Part shown: piece by piece, positions 18,481 through 56,634 of the stretch
Numbering within the stretch: position 1 is the first letter of the stretch
Layout: each line of letters opens with the position of its first letter
Assembly (NCBI RefSeq): GCF_020745735.1
Contig: NC_083425.1
Coordinates: 14,619,575-14,683,574 of the forward strand
DNA length: 64,000 nucleotides
Direction: 5' to 3'
DNA from: Hemiscyllium ocellatum
Taxonomy: Eukaryota
Translations under genes and position numbers: made by a program
Notes under the pieces: model-generated
The model's input: the letters and a program-made list of their open reading frames with translations, nothing else
What the model was told of the DNA's origin: nothing
Databases searched by the model: none

Positions 18481-18790
18481 GCTCATCGCAGCTCGAGCCT
18501 GTTGCTCTCTCCCAGGATGCTTCACTCCTCAGTCATGGCGGCTCCCGTCGCGCTGCACAGGCTGCTGGCGTCGGTCCTGAAACCTTTCGCTGCCGGTTTG
18601 ACAAGGATGAAAGTGGGGCTCCGGAGGCGGGAGAGGAGGTGAGGTTTTGACGAGGCTGACTGTGTCGTTTCCCGGCGGGGTTTATGTTTGTGTGTGTGTG
18701 TTTAGGGTCGGGGAAGGGGAGAGGGGGGGACACTCGGGCCCGGCCTCTGCCCAGAGCCAGAGACCGACCTGAAACCAGCAGCAGCAACAT
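18480..18790 (+). promoter_or_regulatory. PGS1: Small CpG island at the PGS1 5' end
   Basis: High CpG and GC density over exon 1 and the start of intron 1. YY1-like CATGGCGGC overlaps the ATG; CCAAT at 18474-18478. Confidence 0.65.
18535..18638 (+). CDS. PGS1: PGS1 exon 1 (mitochondrial targeting peptide-like)
   Basis: GTCATGG Kozak context; MAAPVALHRLLASVLKPFAAGLTRMKVGLRRRER; donor AG|GTGAGG; phase 2 matches exon 2. Confidence 0.85.
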
Positions 18791-20094: not shown

Positions 20095-21305
20095 TCGGAG
20101 TCCTACAGCACAGAGACAGGCCCTTTGGCCTAAACTGGTTCATGCTGAACAAAATGTCCGTCCATGCTAATTCCATTTCCCTGCACTTGGCCCATATCCT
20201 TCTAATCCTTTGCTATCCAGGTATTTGTCCAAATGCCTTTTAAATGATGTTAATGTACCAGGCTCAATCATTTCCGCTGGCAGCGCATTCCATATGCATA
20301 CCACCCTCTGCTAAAAAGGTTGCCCCTCAGATTCCCTTTTATTCATTCCCCTCTAACCTTAAACTGATGCCCTCTCGTCCTTGATTCCCCAACCCTGGGA
20401 AAAAGACTGAATGCATTCACTCTATCTGTGTCTCTTGTAATCTTATACAACTCTGCAAGGTTCCCTCCTCAGTCTCCTGTGCTCCAAAGAAAAACTTGTC
20501 CAACCTCTCCCTGTAACTTAGACATTGAGTCCTGGCAACGTCCTTGTAACTTTTTTCTGCACTCTTTTCAATTTAATAAATCCTTCCTATAGCAAAGTGG
20601 CCAAAACTGAATATTATTCTCCAAGTGTGGCCTCACCAACACCCTAAACAACTGCAACATAACTTCCCAACTTCTATACTCAGTGTCCTGACTGATGAAG
20701 GCCAGTGCGCCAAAAGCCTTCTTCACTGTCCTATCTACCTGTGATTTGACTTTTAGAGAACTGTGAACCTGAACTCCAAGATCTCTCTGTTCCACTACAC
20801 TCCTTAAGGCCCTACCATTCACCATGAAACTCGTACCTTGATTTGACTTTTCAAAATGCAAGACCTCACATTTATCTGTGTTAAACTCCATTTGCCATGT
20901 CTCGGCCCACTTCTCCAGGTGATCAAGATCCTGCTGCAATTTCTGACAACCTTCCTCACTGTCCATGATACTGCATATTTTAGTGTCATCTGCAAATTTA
21001 CTAATCATGCCTTGTACATTCTCATCCAAATCATTGATATCAATAACAAACAGTAATGGCCCCAACACTGACCCCTGTGGCACTCCACCAGTCACAGGCC
21101 TCCAGTCTGACAAGCAACTATTACTGTCTGCTTCCTACTATCAAGCCACTTTTGTATCCAGTTTGCCAGCCTGCCCTGGATTCCATGTGATCTCAGCTTG
21201 CAGAGCGGCGTACCATGTGGATCCTATCAAAGACTTTCTGAAATCCATATAGACTACGTCTACCACCCTTCCCTCATCAACCTTCCAGGTCACTTCATCA
21301 AATAG
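20095..21305 (-). mobile_element. CR1 LINE, RT C-terminal part and 3' UTR
   Basis: [13 protein letters not shown]...SKFADDTK in ORF 20568-21113; [10 protein letters not shown] upstream. Confidence 0.92.
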
Positions 21306-21629
21306 CTCTTCACAAGTCTGAGGTGTTGATAATATGGAATCATTGATGGTAATGCCATTAAATGTTGAGGGATAATGGATAGATCCTTTCTTGTTGAAGA
21401 TGGTTGTTGGCTGGCACTTGTTTGGCAAGATTGTTACTTGCCCATGCAAGCCTGGAGATTGTCCACGTCTTGCTGCATTTTGACATGGACTGCTTCATCA
21501 CCTGAGTGGTCATGAATGGTGCTAAACATTGTACAATTGTTGGTGAACATTCCCACTTTTGACCTTCCAATGGAGGGAAGCTAATTGAAGCAGCTGAAGA
21601 TAGGGCCTACAACAATATCCTGAGGAATT

Positions 21630-22652
21630 AGGGCTATTGTGGTGCAGTGGTAGTGCCCCATCTCTGAGCCAGGAGACCTAGGTTCAAGTGCTACCTACTC
21701 CAGAGGTGTGTGATAATAGCAATACCATCCCTGATCAAGTTGATTAGAAAATATATTCTGAGGAATTAGGGCTTTTGCGGTGGTGTGATGGTGTCAGTAT
21801 CTCTGAGCCAGAAGGCCTGGGTCCAAGTCCCACCTGCTGCTTAATGTCTCTGAACAGTTGCAGTAGATGATATTTGTCTTGAGCAATTATGGGTCTTGTG
21901 ATACAGTGGTAGTTGTTTTTTTAATCTCTGAGCCAGAAGGCTTGGTTTGCAACCCTACTTGCTCCAAAGGTGTGTAATAACATACCTGAACAGGTTGATT
22001 GGAAAAATGTTCTGAGGGTTGGAGAGGCAATTTCTGGAGTACTGTGTGCAGTTCTGGTTGCCCTGCTGTAGGAAGGATATTGTAAGATGGGAGAGGGTTC
22101 AGAAGGTTTACCAAGATGTTGTTGGGAATGAAGGGTTTAAGTTATAAAAATAGGCTGGATAGCCAGGGTTTTTTCTCACTGGAGCGTAGGAGGTTGAGAA
22201 TGACGTTATAGAGGTTTATCAATTTATGAGGGGCATGGGGAGGGTATTTTCCTCGGGTGGAGGAGTTCAAACCCTGGGAACACATTTTAAGGTGAGAGGA
22301 GATAGTTTTATAAAAGGCATGAGGAGCAACATTTTTACACAGTGGTTTGTGTCTGGTATGAACTGCCAGAGGAAATGTTGGTGCAGGTACAGAGGCGTTT
22401 GGATAAGTACATGAATAGGAAAGATTTGGAGGGATATGGGCCAAACACTGGTAGATAGGACTAGTTTTGTTTGGGAACATAATCGGCATGGGCTAGTTAG
22501 ATTGAAGTGTTTCTTTCCATACAGTATGTATAAATTAGGGTTCTTGAGGTGCAGTGGTAGTGTCCAAACCTCTGCACCAGGAGTCCCGGTTCAAGTCCCA
22601 CCTAGTTCATATATATGCCATAACATCAGAGCACGTTGAAGTAAACAAAACC
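21630..22652 (+). mobile_element. Stack of four short tRNA-derived SINEs at one target, with a CR1 fragment (22018-22531) inside
   Basis: SINEs start at 21630, 21768, 21889 and 22537 (A-box-like TGGTGCAGTGG, B-box-like GGTTCAAGTCC), separated by copies of CTGAGGAATT. Confidence 0.8.
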
Positions 22653-23067
22653 CTGAGGAATTCTTTCAGTGACATCCTGGTGTTGAGAAGACTGACCTTC
22701 TGCAACTAGTCATGTTTATTTGTGCTCTTTTGTCCCTGATTCCCTTTGACTCTCGTTTTGCTAGGGTTCCTTGATGCCACATTCTTCAAATATGGTCTTG
22801 ATGTCAAGGGCAGTCATTCTCGCCTCACCAATGCTGTCTTGTTACATGTTTGAACTCAAGGCTATAATGAGGTAAGGAGCTAAGTGGCCCTGATAGAACC
22901 CAAGTTGAGTAGATGAATATTGGCTGTGAGTAGATTATTGCTAGGTAAATGCGGCTTGTAGCATTACTGATCACCTTTTCAATGATTGTACTCATGTTTA
23001 AGAGTAGTCTGATGGAGGATGGTGGTAACTGTCAGCATTACATCTGCCATTTTTATCTGTACAGGGA

Positions 23068-25124: not shown

Positions 25125-26077
25125 TCCCTGCAGGAGTCCTTCAGGGTAGTGTCCTAAGCCCAACAACCTTCAGCTGCTTCATCAATGTCATAAAGCTCAG
25201 AAATGGTCAGTTTGCTGATGATTGCATAGTGTTAAGCACCATTCACGACTCCTCAGATACTGAAGCAGTCCGTGCTCAAATGCAACAAGATCTGGACAAT
25301 ATCCAGGCTTGGGCTGACAAGTGGCAAGTAACATTCGCTCCATACAAATGCCAGACAATGATCAACACCAATAAGAGACCCTCTAACCACTGCCCCTTGA
25401 CATTCAATGGTATTACCATTGCTGAATCTCCCTCTGTTCACATTTTGGGGTTATCAATGACCAGAAATTCAACTGGACTCACCACATAAACACAGTGGCT
25501 ACAAGAGCAGGTCAGAGACTAAGGATACTCTGGCGAATAACACATCTCTTGACACCCTAATGTCTATCTACCACCTTCAAGGCACAAGTCAGGAGTGTGA
25601 TGGAATACTCCCCACTTGTCTGGATGCGTTCAGCTCCAACAACACTCAGGAAGCTTGACACCATCCAAGACAAAACAACCCGCTTGGTTGGCACCACATT
25701 AACAAACATTCAGTCCCTCCCCCACCAGCACTCAGTAGCAGCAGTGTGTACTATCTACAAGATGCACTGAAGAAAATCACCAAAGATCCTTAGACAGCAC
25801 CTTCCAAACCCAACTAGAGGGACAAGGGCAGCAGGTACATGGGAACACCACCACCTGCAGGTTCCCCTCCAAGCCATTCACCACCTTGACTTGGAAATAT
25901 ACCACCGTTCCTTCACAGTTGTTGGGTCAAAATCCTGGAATTTCCTCCCTACCAGCATTATGGGTCAACCCAAGCAAGTGGACTGCAGCGATTCAAGAAG
26001 GCAGCTCACCACCACCTTCTTGAGGGCAAATAGTGATGGGCTCTCAATGCTGGTCAGCCAGTAAATGAATAAAAAAA
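25125..26077 (+). mobile_element. CR1/L2-group LINE 3' part
   Basis: [39 protein letters not shown]; ends AATGAATAAAAAA. Confidence 0.85.
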
Positions 26078-28455: not shown

Positions 28456-29442
28456 CAACAAATGCCCTATGCACCCGCGACATGACCTCCCAACTCCTAT
28501 ACTTGATATACCTGACTAATAAAGGCAAGTGTATCAAATACCACCTTCACTATCCTGTCTACCTACATCTCCATTTTCAAGGAACTATGAACCTGCACTC
28601 CAAGCTTTCTTTGTTAGCAATACTCCTTAGGATCTTACCATTAACTGTATAAGTCCTGCCCTGATTTGTTTTATCAAGATGTAGCAGGTCACATTTATCT
28701 AGATTAAACTCCACCTGCCAGTCCTCAGCCCATTGACCCATCTGATCAAGGTCCCATTGTCGCCTGAGGTACCTTCTTCACTGTCCACTGCATTTGAAGG
28801 AAGTAGAGGAACTAAATGTTGTTTACGTGGTGAAGGACTGCAGAAAGCTACCGCACAGAGGGATTTGGAAGGCTTCATCCATAAATCACAAGAAGTTAAC
28901 ATCTAAGTTCAGCGTGTAACAGGGAAAATAGATGGAATTTTGGACTTTATTTCAAAGGGAATCGAGGATAAAAGTAGGAAGATTTTTCCAAAACTATATA
29001 AGGCACTGGTCAGAGCACAGGATGCCTTTTCCAAGGAAAGATATACTGGCGTTGGAGACAGTCCAGAGAAGTTTCATTGAGGATGATACCCTGGGTATGG
29101 AGGGGTTGTTTGATGAGATCCTGCTCCTCAGCTGCTACCTGAACTGCTGTGCTTTTCCAGCACAACTCTAATGTAGAATCTGGTTTCCAGCATCTGCAGT
29201 AATTGTTTTTACCTACCTGAGATATTGAGAAGGTTGGGCCTGTAATGATTGGAATATAGAAGAGGTAACGTTGTTGAAACATACAAGATTTTTAGGGTGC
29301 TTAATAGTAATTGTGTGGAGGTGGTTTACTTTTGTGGGAGAATCTTGGACTAAGGGGCATAATTTCAGAATAAGGGGTTGCAAGTTAAAAAGATGAGGAA
29401 TTTTCTCTCTGAGTAATGAATCTGAGGAATTCTTTACTACAG

Positions 29443-38620: not shown

Positions 38621-38688
38621 TCTACTATCTCAACTATTTCCATCTATCCTGTTGCTATATTTTTAATTGAGAACTTTTTTGTGCCTAG

Positions 38689-38884
38689 GTCATCGTACTT
38701 GCTGTTGGCTCCATTACTGTGTCAGGCCAAACCACAGGCTGAAGTGCCATCTCCTTCTTGCAGTGCATATGCACACAATATTCAGCGATTCCAGTGGATT
38801 GGGGAGTTTGTTCCAGCTTTTGGAATTTCAGGCAGCCAGGTGAAGGTGCTAAGTTCCCCCTCAGAGTTCTATGAAACAATGAAG
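38689..38884 (+). CDS. PGS1: PGS1 exon 2
   Basis: Acceptor CTAG|G; SSYLLLAPLL...RFQWIGEFVPAFGISGSQVKVLSSPSEFYETMK; donor AAG|GTAAGT. Confidence 0.95.
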
Positions 38885-40597
38885 GTAAGTTAATGTGCAA
38901 AATGGATTACCATTTGAGCATGTGAGCAATGTCATTTTGTGTATGCAAAAGGCTCAGAGCATTCTGGTTTTTGGTGTTGGCCTTTTTGTATGCTCTTCAT
39001 TTTTTATTCCTTCATCTACCTTGGAAAAATATGTAATGAATTTATATGCACCCGACCATTTCACATGCACAGGTACATATGATGGTTTTCAGTTTTTAAA
39101 CAGTTAGTTGACTGTTAGAATTGCAACTTAAGTGGTTCGTGTTCTTTTTAGTTCAGAGCATCAGAGCGTACAACTTTGTATGGTATTTTTTGCATCTAAG
39201 TTGGATCTGCTGTAGCAGTGATTTACCAGAAGTTGCAGTGCAGTTGCAGCAAATTTTGCAAAGCTGCACTCGCCAAGTTTTTGAGGAATTCAATGTAACA
39301 GTATAGGCATTCTCTTACTGTAATCTGGAGGCCTGGACTAATAATCCAGAGAATGATTTCAAATCTCAGTATACTAGACAGAGAATTTATACTATGAGGC
39401 TGTAATATTCTCATCGAAAATACTATTTTCTTTCACGCATGCCATTTGGAGGACACTTGGTACTTGTTATATATACAATTCCGTTCCTCTCCAGTAGGGT
39501 TGACTGTTAGAATGAGCACTTCAGTAGATAGATCACTGAACAGGTCTGTTATCATTTTCTCAGACCAGTTATGGCAGAGCCTTGTCCTATATCTTGAGAA
39601 TTATAAGTAAGATTAATTTAGTCCACAGATGTCCTTTGGAAGTTCTGCATAAAATTGCAGTTTTATTTTGTTGCTACCACAATCACATCACTACTGTAGA
39701 ATTATCAGTAGAACCTGTAAGTGGAGTGCATTGTATTCTTTCATCTGCGTGCTCTGAGATTCATTCCACATTGACTAAAGAGCTAAGAGCTACCCACTGC
39801 TGTTGTCGGTGCTGAGGTGCATGCTAATGAGACAAAGTGGCGCAATGGTAGTGTCTGTGTGAAATGTTCTGTGTTTAAATACCACCTGCTGCAGAGGTGT
39901 CATAACATGCCTGAATAGTTAATTAAAAAATAACTTTAAAAAATCTAAATTTCAATAGTGATTTGCAGTCTCACCAAAGGAACAGGATAGATGACAGATG
40001 GGAATAATGTAAATGCCACGTCAGAAATTTTTTTGGATGCTGATTTATAGGTTTAAGATGTGCAATCCTAGAAACTTCACTCTCCATCCAGTAAATTCTG
40101 TACCAAACATCGAATTAAAAAACAAGTTATGGAAATTTTTTATTTGCAGATTGACAGCATACAATTGACACATTGCAAAAGAAACAAGTAAGTTTATTAT
40201 CTTTGGAATTGTTGGAGAAATTTGTTTAGAAGGTTTAAATAAATTCCTTTAATTCTTAGGCATACTAAATCTGCAAAATTAATTAACCAAAAAATTACAT
40301 TAAAAACAATATTCATATAATACATTCATAATCATATAATTGTGTACCTCCAATTTAATGTCATTAAAAATGATTTATAATAAGAACAAAGATTAGAATG
40401 AGAGGTTGCCCACTTTGTCATCATCTTGATACATGTATAGGTAGTGGATTATAGTCTACACTCATGGCGATTAAAGCTTTCAACATTTCATGTATTCATT
40501 TTGACTTAGTTGTTGGTGTACAGCAATATAACTTTCATAAGTTTACATTATTGTTAACTGAATTGAAATAATGTTCTGTTTTGATTTATATAAATAG

Positions 40598-40675
40598 GAA
40601 CATATCAAAATGGCTAAGAAGAGAATCGTTATGGCTTCTTTATACCTTGGGACAGGACCTTTGGAGCAGGAGCTG
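40598..40675 (+). CDS. PGS1: PGS1 exon 3
   Basis: EHIKMAKKRIVMASLYLGTGPLEQEL; acceptor ATAG|, donor CTG|GTGGGT. Confidence 0.95.
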
Positions 40676-40774
40676 GTGGGTAACATACTGGAGGACCCCA
40701 GAAGTTAATTATTGAATGGTATTGTATTTTGTGTATTTTATTGGAATTAAACAATAATTTGGTATATGCAGCAC

Positions 40775-54665: not shown

Positions 54666-54803
54666 AAAACTCCTTATTGTTAGGGATTACATGTACAACA
54701 AATGAACTATCTGCCTTGACTGCACTCATTCCTTTGCACCATCAAGTTGAAAAGTTTGATTCTAATTGCTGTAAGCTGACTATTTTTCAGTGGAAGTGAA
54801 ATA

Positions 54804-55157
54804 TAGCCTGGATGTTGTGGATGCAGTCTGATCTAGCCTGGATGCTGTGGATGCAGTCTGATCTAGCCTGGATGCTGTGGATGCAGTCTGATCTAGCCTG
54901 GATGTTGTGGATGCAGTCTGCTCTAGCCTGGATGCTGTGGTTGCAGTCTGATCTAGCCTGGATGCTGTGGATGCAGTCTGATCTAGCCTGGATGCTGTGG
55001 TTGCAGTCTGATCTAGCCTGGATGCTGTGGTTGCAGTCTGATCTAGCCTGGATGCTGTGGTTGCAGTCTGATCTAGCCTGGATGCGGTGGTTGCAGTCTG
55101 ATTTAGCCTGGATGTTGAGGTTGCAGTCTGAGGTGGCCTGGAGGTTGTCGTTGCAGC
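54804..55157. repeat. 30-bp minisatellite, ~11.5 copies
   Basis: Unit TAGCCTGGATGCTGTGG(A/T)TGCAGTCTGATC, degenerating toward the right. Confidence 0.97.
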
Positions 55158-55980
55158 TGTGTCCCCAAGGGAAGAAACCACATCTTAACCAACCCCGAGA
55201 AACCATTAGATTAAAAGAAGCCTTCACTCCCCCAAACAACCCCTTCCATTGCTGAGAAATGTGTTTCCCCCCCACCCACCCGCACAACACCACCACCAAG
55301 AACAGCAGTCCCTTGACCTCCTCCTAACAATGTTCAACCCCTCTCCTCTCTCTGGGTGTCGCTTGCCTGTAGAACACTTATCCTGGGCGCATAACATTAA
55401 CTCTGCTGCTCACTGTCAGATGCTGTCAGACCTACTGAGCTCCTCCAGCATTCTTTGTGTTTGTTTAAGACACAATCATATTTTCCATTAGTTATCAGAA
55501 TATTTTCTGGAATAGTGAGCAACATTTGTTACCCCCTGTTTTTCACTCAGATGTTTGATCACTTTTATTCATTCCAGGGTCTTCGACATTCTTGTCAATG
55601 TTAGAATTCATTACGATCATTAGTTGCCCTTGAGACAGTGATGGTGAGCTGTCTTTTAAAGCCTCTGTAGTCCATAGGGTGAAGCTACACCCATAGTGCT
55701 GTTTGTTTGGGAGTTTGAAGATCTAGACCTAATGACCACCGATTGAATGGAATCACATTTTTGCCAAACATTTTGTGAAGTTAACTTTCCTTCATTGCTG
55801 CATAAGTCAAAATTCGGTGGTTCTTCTATCCTTGAAAATAATACAGAATTTATAATGTTTTACGGAATGTCAACACACATGAATTCTAATATTTAATTGA
55901 GTATTATTCAAACGTCTGTTTTATTAAATTTAAAAATATGCCAGTCACAGATGCAGTATTATCTTAAAATTGTTTTTCAG

Positions 55981-56505
55981 GTAACCGAAAAGATTTCTGT
56001 GCAGAAGCAAATAAGAGGATCATGGCTGTGGTGAATGAAGCAAGAAGCAAGCAGCTGTACAGAAACCATATAAAATGCCTGAGTGAGAACAATTCTGAAC
56101 AGTTGTTAATACCCAGTGACAATGGTCAAGCTCTGAAATGCACAGATACCTGGATCTATCCCATAATACAAATGAAATCATTTGAAATTAGAATAGACGA
56201 GCAAGTGACTGAAACATTAATGACTAGAGCTGAGGCGGAGTCTAAGATGTACTTGACTTCGGGGTATTTTAACCTCACTAAAGCATATATGGATCTTATT
56301 TTGGGTACCAGTGCGGATTATCAGATACTGCTCGCATCACCAGAGGTAAATGGCTTCTTTGGTGCAAAAGGTGTGGCAGGAGCCATTCCTTCTGCTTATG
56401 TTTACATTGCCAGACAGTTTTACAGGAGAGTGTACCAGAGTGGCCTGCAAGATAGAATAAGACTACATGAATACTTCAGGGAAGACTGGACTTTTCATGC
56501 AAAAG
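55981..56505 (+). CDS. PGS1: PGS1 exon 7 (ends in the second HKD-like motif)
   Basis: NRKDFCAEANKRIMAVVNEAR...DTWIYPIIQMK...YLTSGYFNLT...LASPEVNGFFGAKGVAGAIPSAY...WTFHAK(G); acceptor TCAG|, donor G|GTGAGT. Confidence 0.97.
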
Positions 56506-56634
56506 GTGAGTGGTAATATTTTTTTGTAAACTTACCACTTTTTCCACAGCTGTGTTGGTGGTTGTATTGGTTTGGTTTGTCAGCTCTCATATCTGTTGTA
56601 TGAAGACATCCTAGATTTTACACAAATTCATTTC

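Follow-up and report, generated by a model that had tools for sequence, protein, structure and literature searches.

How did four copies of one SINE come to stand head-to-tail at a single site in a decayed LINE, each separated from the next by a copy of the same short target: through separate insertions into a site that was regenerated each time, or through a single insertion that was then multiplied by tandem duplication? The question arises in a window of 64,000 nucleotides from chromosome CM036683.1 of Hemiscyllium ocellatum, the epaulette shark (~14.62–14.68 Mb). Separate insertions would show that a SINE lacking site specificity is able to return several times to a regenerated target, which would bear on the origin of retroposon tandems and of some satellites, and on the safety of SINE insertions as homoplasy-free phylogenetic markers; if the units are duplicates, the locus is a routine small tandem array. 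The structure itself is of a known general kind, a head-to-tail SINE tetramer whose units are spaced by copies of a single target-site duplication, and it is real, ancient and decayed. As to its origin, we lean, without great assurance, towards independent insertions, at least two, whether or not exchange between the units followed.

The four SINE copies (A–D), each of ~115 nt and on the plus strand, lie exactly at the PQ codons of the reverse transcriptase (RT) of the host LINE and are bounded by five target copies (T0–T4; ATCCTGAGGAATT, with 0–3 changes each when compared as 13-mers). In order along the window, the stack consists of:

21617–21629, plus strand: T0, the original target copy (ATCCTGAGGAATT), with its LINE context kept; the minus strand carries I-P-Q-D codons.
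21630–21754, plus strand: SINE copy A, full length; it has a 9-base insertion of its own and is the least decayed unit, 10–12% from consensus.
21755–21767, plus strand: T1, target copy ATTCTGAGGAATT, 1 change.
21768–21873, plus strand: SINE copy B, with full-length ends and two internal deletions; 23–28% from consensus.
21876–21888, plus strand: T2, target copy GTCTTGAGCAATT, 3 changes.
21889–22008, plus strand: SINE copy C, full length; 17–19% from consensus.
22009–22017, plus strand: left part of T3 (GTTCTGAGG); T3 as a whole has 2 changes.
22018–22532, plus strand: old 3' fragment of a CR1 element, 5'-truncated, 515 bases, inside T3 and in the same orientation as the SINEs.
22533–22536, plus strand: right part of T3 (AATT).
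22537–22649, plus strand: SINE copy D, full length; the most decayed unit, 27–30% from consensus, chiefly in its 3' half.
22650–22662, plus strand: T4, target copy ACCCTGAGGAATT, 1 change, running on into LINE sequence.

A preliminary description of this DNA had placed a repeated 10-mer at 21620, 21758, 21879, 22012+22533 and 22653, and all of these positions can be read directly in the sequence: CTGAGGAATT is exact at 21620, 21758 and 22653, degenerate at 21879 (TTGAGCAATT), and split at T3 into CTGAGG (22012–22017) and AATT (22533–22536). On the plus strand of the whole window the exact 10-mer occurs five times against ~0.06 expected, with three of the five occurrences in the stack, and the repeated target is best read as 11–13 bases, (AT)CCTGAGGAATT. 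The later CR1 insert that had been proposed to split one target copy is the fragment listed above, which shares 64–75% identity with the window's other CR1 3' ends and reads LEYCVQFW... in its plus-strand frame. The SINEs between the target copies are mutually diverged, as described earlier, with pairwise identities among the four units of 62–74%. TRF reported no array on the stack, owing to the strong divergence of the units and the interruption of the array.

The target also holds two short palindromes, CCTGAGG (of the CCTNAGG type) and GAATTC, which can be seen at 21619–21634 and 22652–22666; in a paper on Bov-A2 in TP53 (PMC4324840), short palindromes are proposed as entry points for SINEs.

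The host of the stack is recognizable on both sides of it:

21300–21629, minus strand: downstream part of the host LINE RT, reading DIVVGPIFSCFN..MFTNNCTMFSTIHD..; it adjoins a CR1 copy below about 21300.
22653–23000 (upper limit approximate), minus strand: upstream part of the host LINE RT, reading ..ALDIK..GQSSQHQDVTERIPQ.

On the minus strand the flanks of the stack read through as ...GQSSQHQDVTERIPQ followed by DIVVGPIFSCFN*LPS..., which is the VPQGSVLGP region of the LINE RT, so the earlier assignment of the target to the PQ codons of this decayed motif stands. The duplicated bases are the I-P-Q codons of the dead minus-strand RT, the spacer between units is LINE sequence, and with a single spacer copy the RT frame of the decayed host LINE is continuous across the site. 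The equivalent site in the plus-strand copy of the host LINE had been reported as empty with a point change, and the motif there (25127–25160) is indeed uninterrupted, with CTT instead of CCT. This second copy matches the repeated 10-mer at 8 of 10 bases and, in an alignment made by eye, its positions 25134–25149 differ at 4 of the 16 bases found at the insertion site (plus strand). The CR1 copy adjoining the host LINE has a 181-aa open RT frame (20568–21300, minus strand), and since it abuts the LINE that holds the stack, at least three retroelement layers are nested at this place.

Copies of the same SINE elsewhere provide the comparison set, which consists of four outside loci (E, F, G and H), and the outside consensus used below rests on these only. 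The two within the window, previously noted near 4698 and 39835 as lying outside the target, are real and sit in other sequence:

4697–4811, minus strand: SINE copy E, outside the stack; its target is unrelated, and the copy occurs in both Chiloscyllium species.
39828–39936, plus strand: SINE copy F, likewise outside the stack; it is decayed, and its target is also unrelated.

A profile built from the six window copies led to two further loci, G and H, on another chromosome (L010), in DNA reached with a V-ATPase G retrocopy as the query, which led to the parent locus in three species. Copy H (L010:22415–22484) is 5'-truncated and has a clean 13-base target-site duplication (CTCCAAGGACAGG) in unrelated sequence. 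Copies G and H set the true 3' end of the SINE, ...GTTGATTAGAAAATAT; in both it reads ..GATTAGAAA(A/G)TAT, also written ..GTTGATTAGAAA(A/G)TAT. Across the four outside loci, in ~120 kb of hemiscylliid DNA, the element is dispersed with a fixed 3' end and target-site duplications, at a density outside the stack of ~1 copy per 30 kb. We also considered whether D might belong to a separate SINE family; this was ruled out, as the 3' half of D still aligns with E. The head of the consensus contains two Pol III-type motifs, CAGTGGTAG, which is A-box-like, and GGTTCAAGTCC, which is B-box-like, ~30 nt apart. ARAGORN found no tRNA and Rfam returned nothing at E up to 1, and because neither calls a tRNA, the label 'tRNA-derived' given to the family is plausible at most. 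No LINE whose 3' end resembles the SINE tail (..GGTTGATTAGAAAATAT), and which could thus be its partner, was found in the window or the fetched shark loci (~230 kb).

Copy G is common to H. ocellatum, Chiloscyllium punctatum and C. plagiosum, as is copy E, and the family therefore predates the split between Hemiscyllium and Chiloscyllium. Orthologous DNA of the two genera is 92.6–95.3% identical over most long blocks and 87% identical over the longest, and the stack, at 10–30% decay, is much older than that split. Loci reached through a SOCS-like gene upstream of the window held no copies beyond orthologues of E, and a C. punctatum locus reached through a CR1 piece held no copy of the SINE. 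A scan of metagenomes with a 20-base SINE core gave six matches, all of them chance resemblances and none a SINE.

The outside loci bear directly on why the stack lies where it does. The preliminary description had read it as target-preferring insertion into a conserved motif of another retroelement. Stated in full, the endonuclease of the partner LINE would recognize CCTGAGGAA, the PQG-coding stretch of other retroelements, with the stack as one hit among many; we regard this reading as very improbable. Four SINE units and a CR1 fragment do lie at a single motif, and at all five loci compared, with boundaries that we set ourselves, the bases after the presumed nick are a C followed by pyrimidines (CCT, CTC, CTC, CCC and CTT). 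However, the sequence around each of the four outside loci is unrelated, none has the motif and they share at most T|C at the nick, so that the SINE lacks the distribution of site-specific elements of the R1, R2 or Tx1 type, in which most copies occupy one defined target. None of the ~14 RT PQG motifs (two host-LINE copies, the rest CR1) in the window and loci L001 and L009–L011, ~230 kb of shark DNA in total, was occupied, no SINE is inserted at the exact 10-mers at 4420 and 29422, and the motif copy that was actually struck is a decayed variant. The proposed preference thus found no support, and because the outside loci are unrelated and the PQG motifs unoccupied, the place of the stack at the PQG codons looks incidental, a coincidence of position. 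The 10-mer at 29422 lies in a stretch (29393–29431) that carries an exact CTGAGGAATTCTTT, 14 bases identical to the right edge of the stack; the stretch codes for NLWNSLP in a CR1 3' region and was rejected as a second target, the match being a chance resemblance.

Separate insertion and tandem duplication yield identical anatomy, and for this reason only the unit sequences can decide between them. No alignment column has a state common to A–D but absent from the four outside loci, and the states shared by pairs of units are few and mutually conflicting (AC 2, CD 2, BC 1, AD 1, BD 1), which favors separate insertions. The maximum-likelihood tree of the units and the outside copies is a star, in which the stack forms a single clade in 0 of 200 bootstrap trees; copy A is 76–78% identical to E, G and H and 70–74% identical to B, C and D, and the pairs B–C, B–D and C–D are at 62–63%. 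That the tree is star-like, and that no unit is nearer to its neighbors than to outside copies, again favors separate insertions. The preliminary description had taken a clade of the four copies as the mark of tandem duplication, and its expectation was borne out in part: the tree contains no such clade, but the AU test does not reject one (p 0.24). This result counts against separate insertions, as at ~110 sites an early duplication would leave no trace, and the case for them is weakened in addition by a consensus drawn from four outside loci only.

The alternative, in which a single SINE was inserted and all units derive from it by early tandem duplication followed by separate decay, is one that we take seriously while holding it somewhat doubtful. 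As a first step, illegitimate recombination or replication slippage between two target copies of 13–16 bases would produce a dimer; as a second, the 125-base units, still nearly identical at that time, would reach four by unequal exchange. The first step would be the reciprocal of a known process in which SINEs are precisely deleted by way of their target duplications. Precise SINE loss by recombination between target-site duplications is reportedly documented in primates, in work by van de Lagemaat et al. from 2005 in Genome Res, and its reciprocal would be a tandem dimer with one middle target copy, as tandem duplication would give here; what that work describes, unlike the shark stack, is deletions, and in primates. 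We are aware of no survey in which the duplication product of such exchange was examined for SINEs.

Duplication is the simplest account of the register of the array. All units are full length, with their first base at one and the same position after AATT and an entire target copy behind each; the 5' junctions of all four are in one register to the base (AATT|AGGG or AATT|ATGGG), and the 3' junctions agree within 1–5 bases. Separate insertions are disfavored in this respect, because both nicks must recur three times in exact register, and this recurrence weighs the more because copy H has its clean 13-base duplication in unrelated sequence and the SINE shows no strong site preference; the lack of target specificity elsewhere likewise fits duplication, as does the clade that the AU test leaves standing. 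Against duplication, no derived state is common to the four units, and therefore all duplications would have to fall within roughly the first tenth of the life of the array; nor is any pair of units clearly closer than the others.

The amount of decay provides a second line of evidence. Measured from a leave-one-out consensus, decay is 10% in A, 19% in C, 23% in B and 27% in D, and against the outside-only consensus the values are 12%, 17%, 28% and 30%, respectively. Homogeneity of decay among the units is rejected (p 0.019 and 0.008), Tajima's relative-rate test separates A from D (p 0.0005 and 0.007), and terminal branches measure 0.065 versus 0.26 and 0.31. Descendants of one insert are of equal age, whenever they were duplicated, and should not differ in this way, so that the unequal decay argues against a single insert. 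The heterogeneity is, however, confined to the 3' ~40 bases (p 0.0007), whereas the 5' part is homogeneous (p 0.48), as duplication predicts, and the excess changes in D are clustered, a GT-rich run having turned into ATATATAT; these changes may represent a few complex events. Both the confinement and the clustering weaken the argument for separate insertions. Decay in the target copies is similar to that in the 5' halves of the units (7/65 versus 46/259, p 0.19), which agrees with duplication and is compatible with either model.

The target copies themselves carry conflicting signals. T2 and T3, on either side of C, both have a derived G at position 1, as expected if C entered an already mutated target copy. 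A derived T at position 3 is common to T1 and T3; it contradicts the shared G and fits duplication, specifically of a two-unit block. Because decay alternates along the array, we considered such a block duplication, in which a dimer of a young and an old unit (AB) gave rise to CD, and rejected it: A–C is the closest pair but reaches 74%, B–D is at 63%, and the 2–3 supporting characters are matched by conflicting ones.

Returning to repeated insertion, which we favor, the stack would have started when two or more independent retro-insertions struck one regenerated target, a course known as 'double insertion'. LINE-type machinery would place its nicks directly ahead of (AT)CC on the bottom strand and directly behind AATT on the top strand, and each insertion would duplicate 11–13 bases, leaving an intact site on both sides that could be used again; further copies were possibly added later by unequal exchange between units. 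Under such a scheme the decayed site would have been re-used since, once struck, it was offered again, and its PQG coding would not be the reason. From their decay, D and B would be the oldest insertions, followed by C and then A. That a different element, the CR1 fragment, also landed inside a target copy speaks for separate insertions as well.

The stack has counterparts in other animals. In Drosophila, tandems of non-LTR elements with a target duplication between units are attributed to double insertion followed by unequal exchange (McGurk and Barbash 2018, PMC5932611), with the R1 array on the X chromosome and dimers of the P-element and jockey as examples (PMC5932611). Separate insertions gain support here because double insertion is thus the published account of non-LTR tandems spaced by target-site duplications (PMC5932611). 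The shark stack likewise consists of head-to-tail units of non-LTR type in one orientation, with exactly one target-duplication length of LINE target sequence between them and the site regenerated. Unlike the Drosophila tandems, it is made of a ~115-nt SINE and is ancient (10–30% decay), and unlike R1 or P, the SINE has no evident preferred target. The truncation test used for jockey dimers is inapplicable to the stack because all units have the same 5' end. We consider it unlikely that the partner machinery, without a fixed target sequence, preferentially returns to its own junctions, which would make any struck site a self-renewing landing pad; if true, SINEs could seed tandem arrays through a 'site memory' free of sequence specificity, unlike the targeting of Tx1 or R1.

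A comparable arrangement is found 15 kb upstream in the same window, where a stack of Tx1-type LINEs occupies the TATA region of an LTR (5601–7049), with same-direction units and a repeated target of ~12 bases. The target of that stack, ..TTCTGTTTA.. on the plus strand, is unrelated to CCTGAGGAATT; a link between the two stacks was therefore rejected, and the earlier statement that the SINE stack is independent of the LTR array was upheld.

The gene in which the stack resides is PGS1 (phosphatidylglycerophosphate synthase), whose exons were placed by comparison with another shark's PGS1 locus, to which they are 82–90% identical:

~18498–18683: PGS1 exon 1.
38650–38895: PGS1 exon.
40571–40748: PGS1 exon.
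55964–56513: PGS1 exon, large.

Given these matches, the window spans PGS1 from exon 1 onward, and with the exons so placed the SINE stack lies ~3 kb inside intron 1, in sense orientation. A 66-kb PGS1 locus (L012) from a shark outside this family, found with the exon at 56022–56516 as the query and encoding a protein that clusters at 90% with Scyliorhinus PGS1, contains PGS1 intron 1 but neither a copy of the SINE nor the host LINE. Nothing suggests that the stack serves either PGS1 or the host LINE; it is a decayed intronic relic.

A gene for a 205-aa SH2/SOCS-box protein lies ~1 kb upstream of the window start, with the same synteny in L012. In C. punctatum, a ~3.1-kb insertion relative to H. 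ocellatum (L009:18903–22004), at the gene beside ATP6V1G1, contains a CR1 RT. Two long open frames in the window consist of tandem repeat units, ..TAHTLYQSSLLT.. at 7974–9670 (plus strand) and ..IQARSDCNHS.. at 54787–55299 (minus strand), and are probably minisatellites rather than genes.
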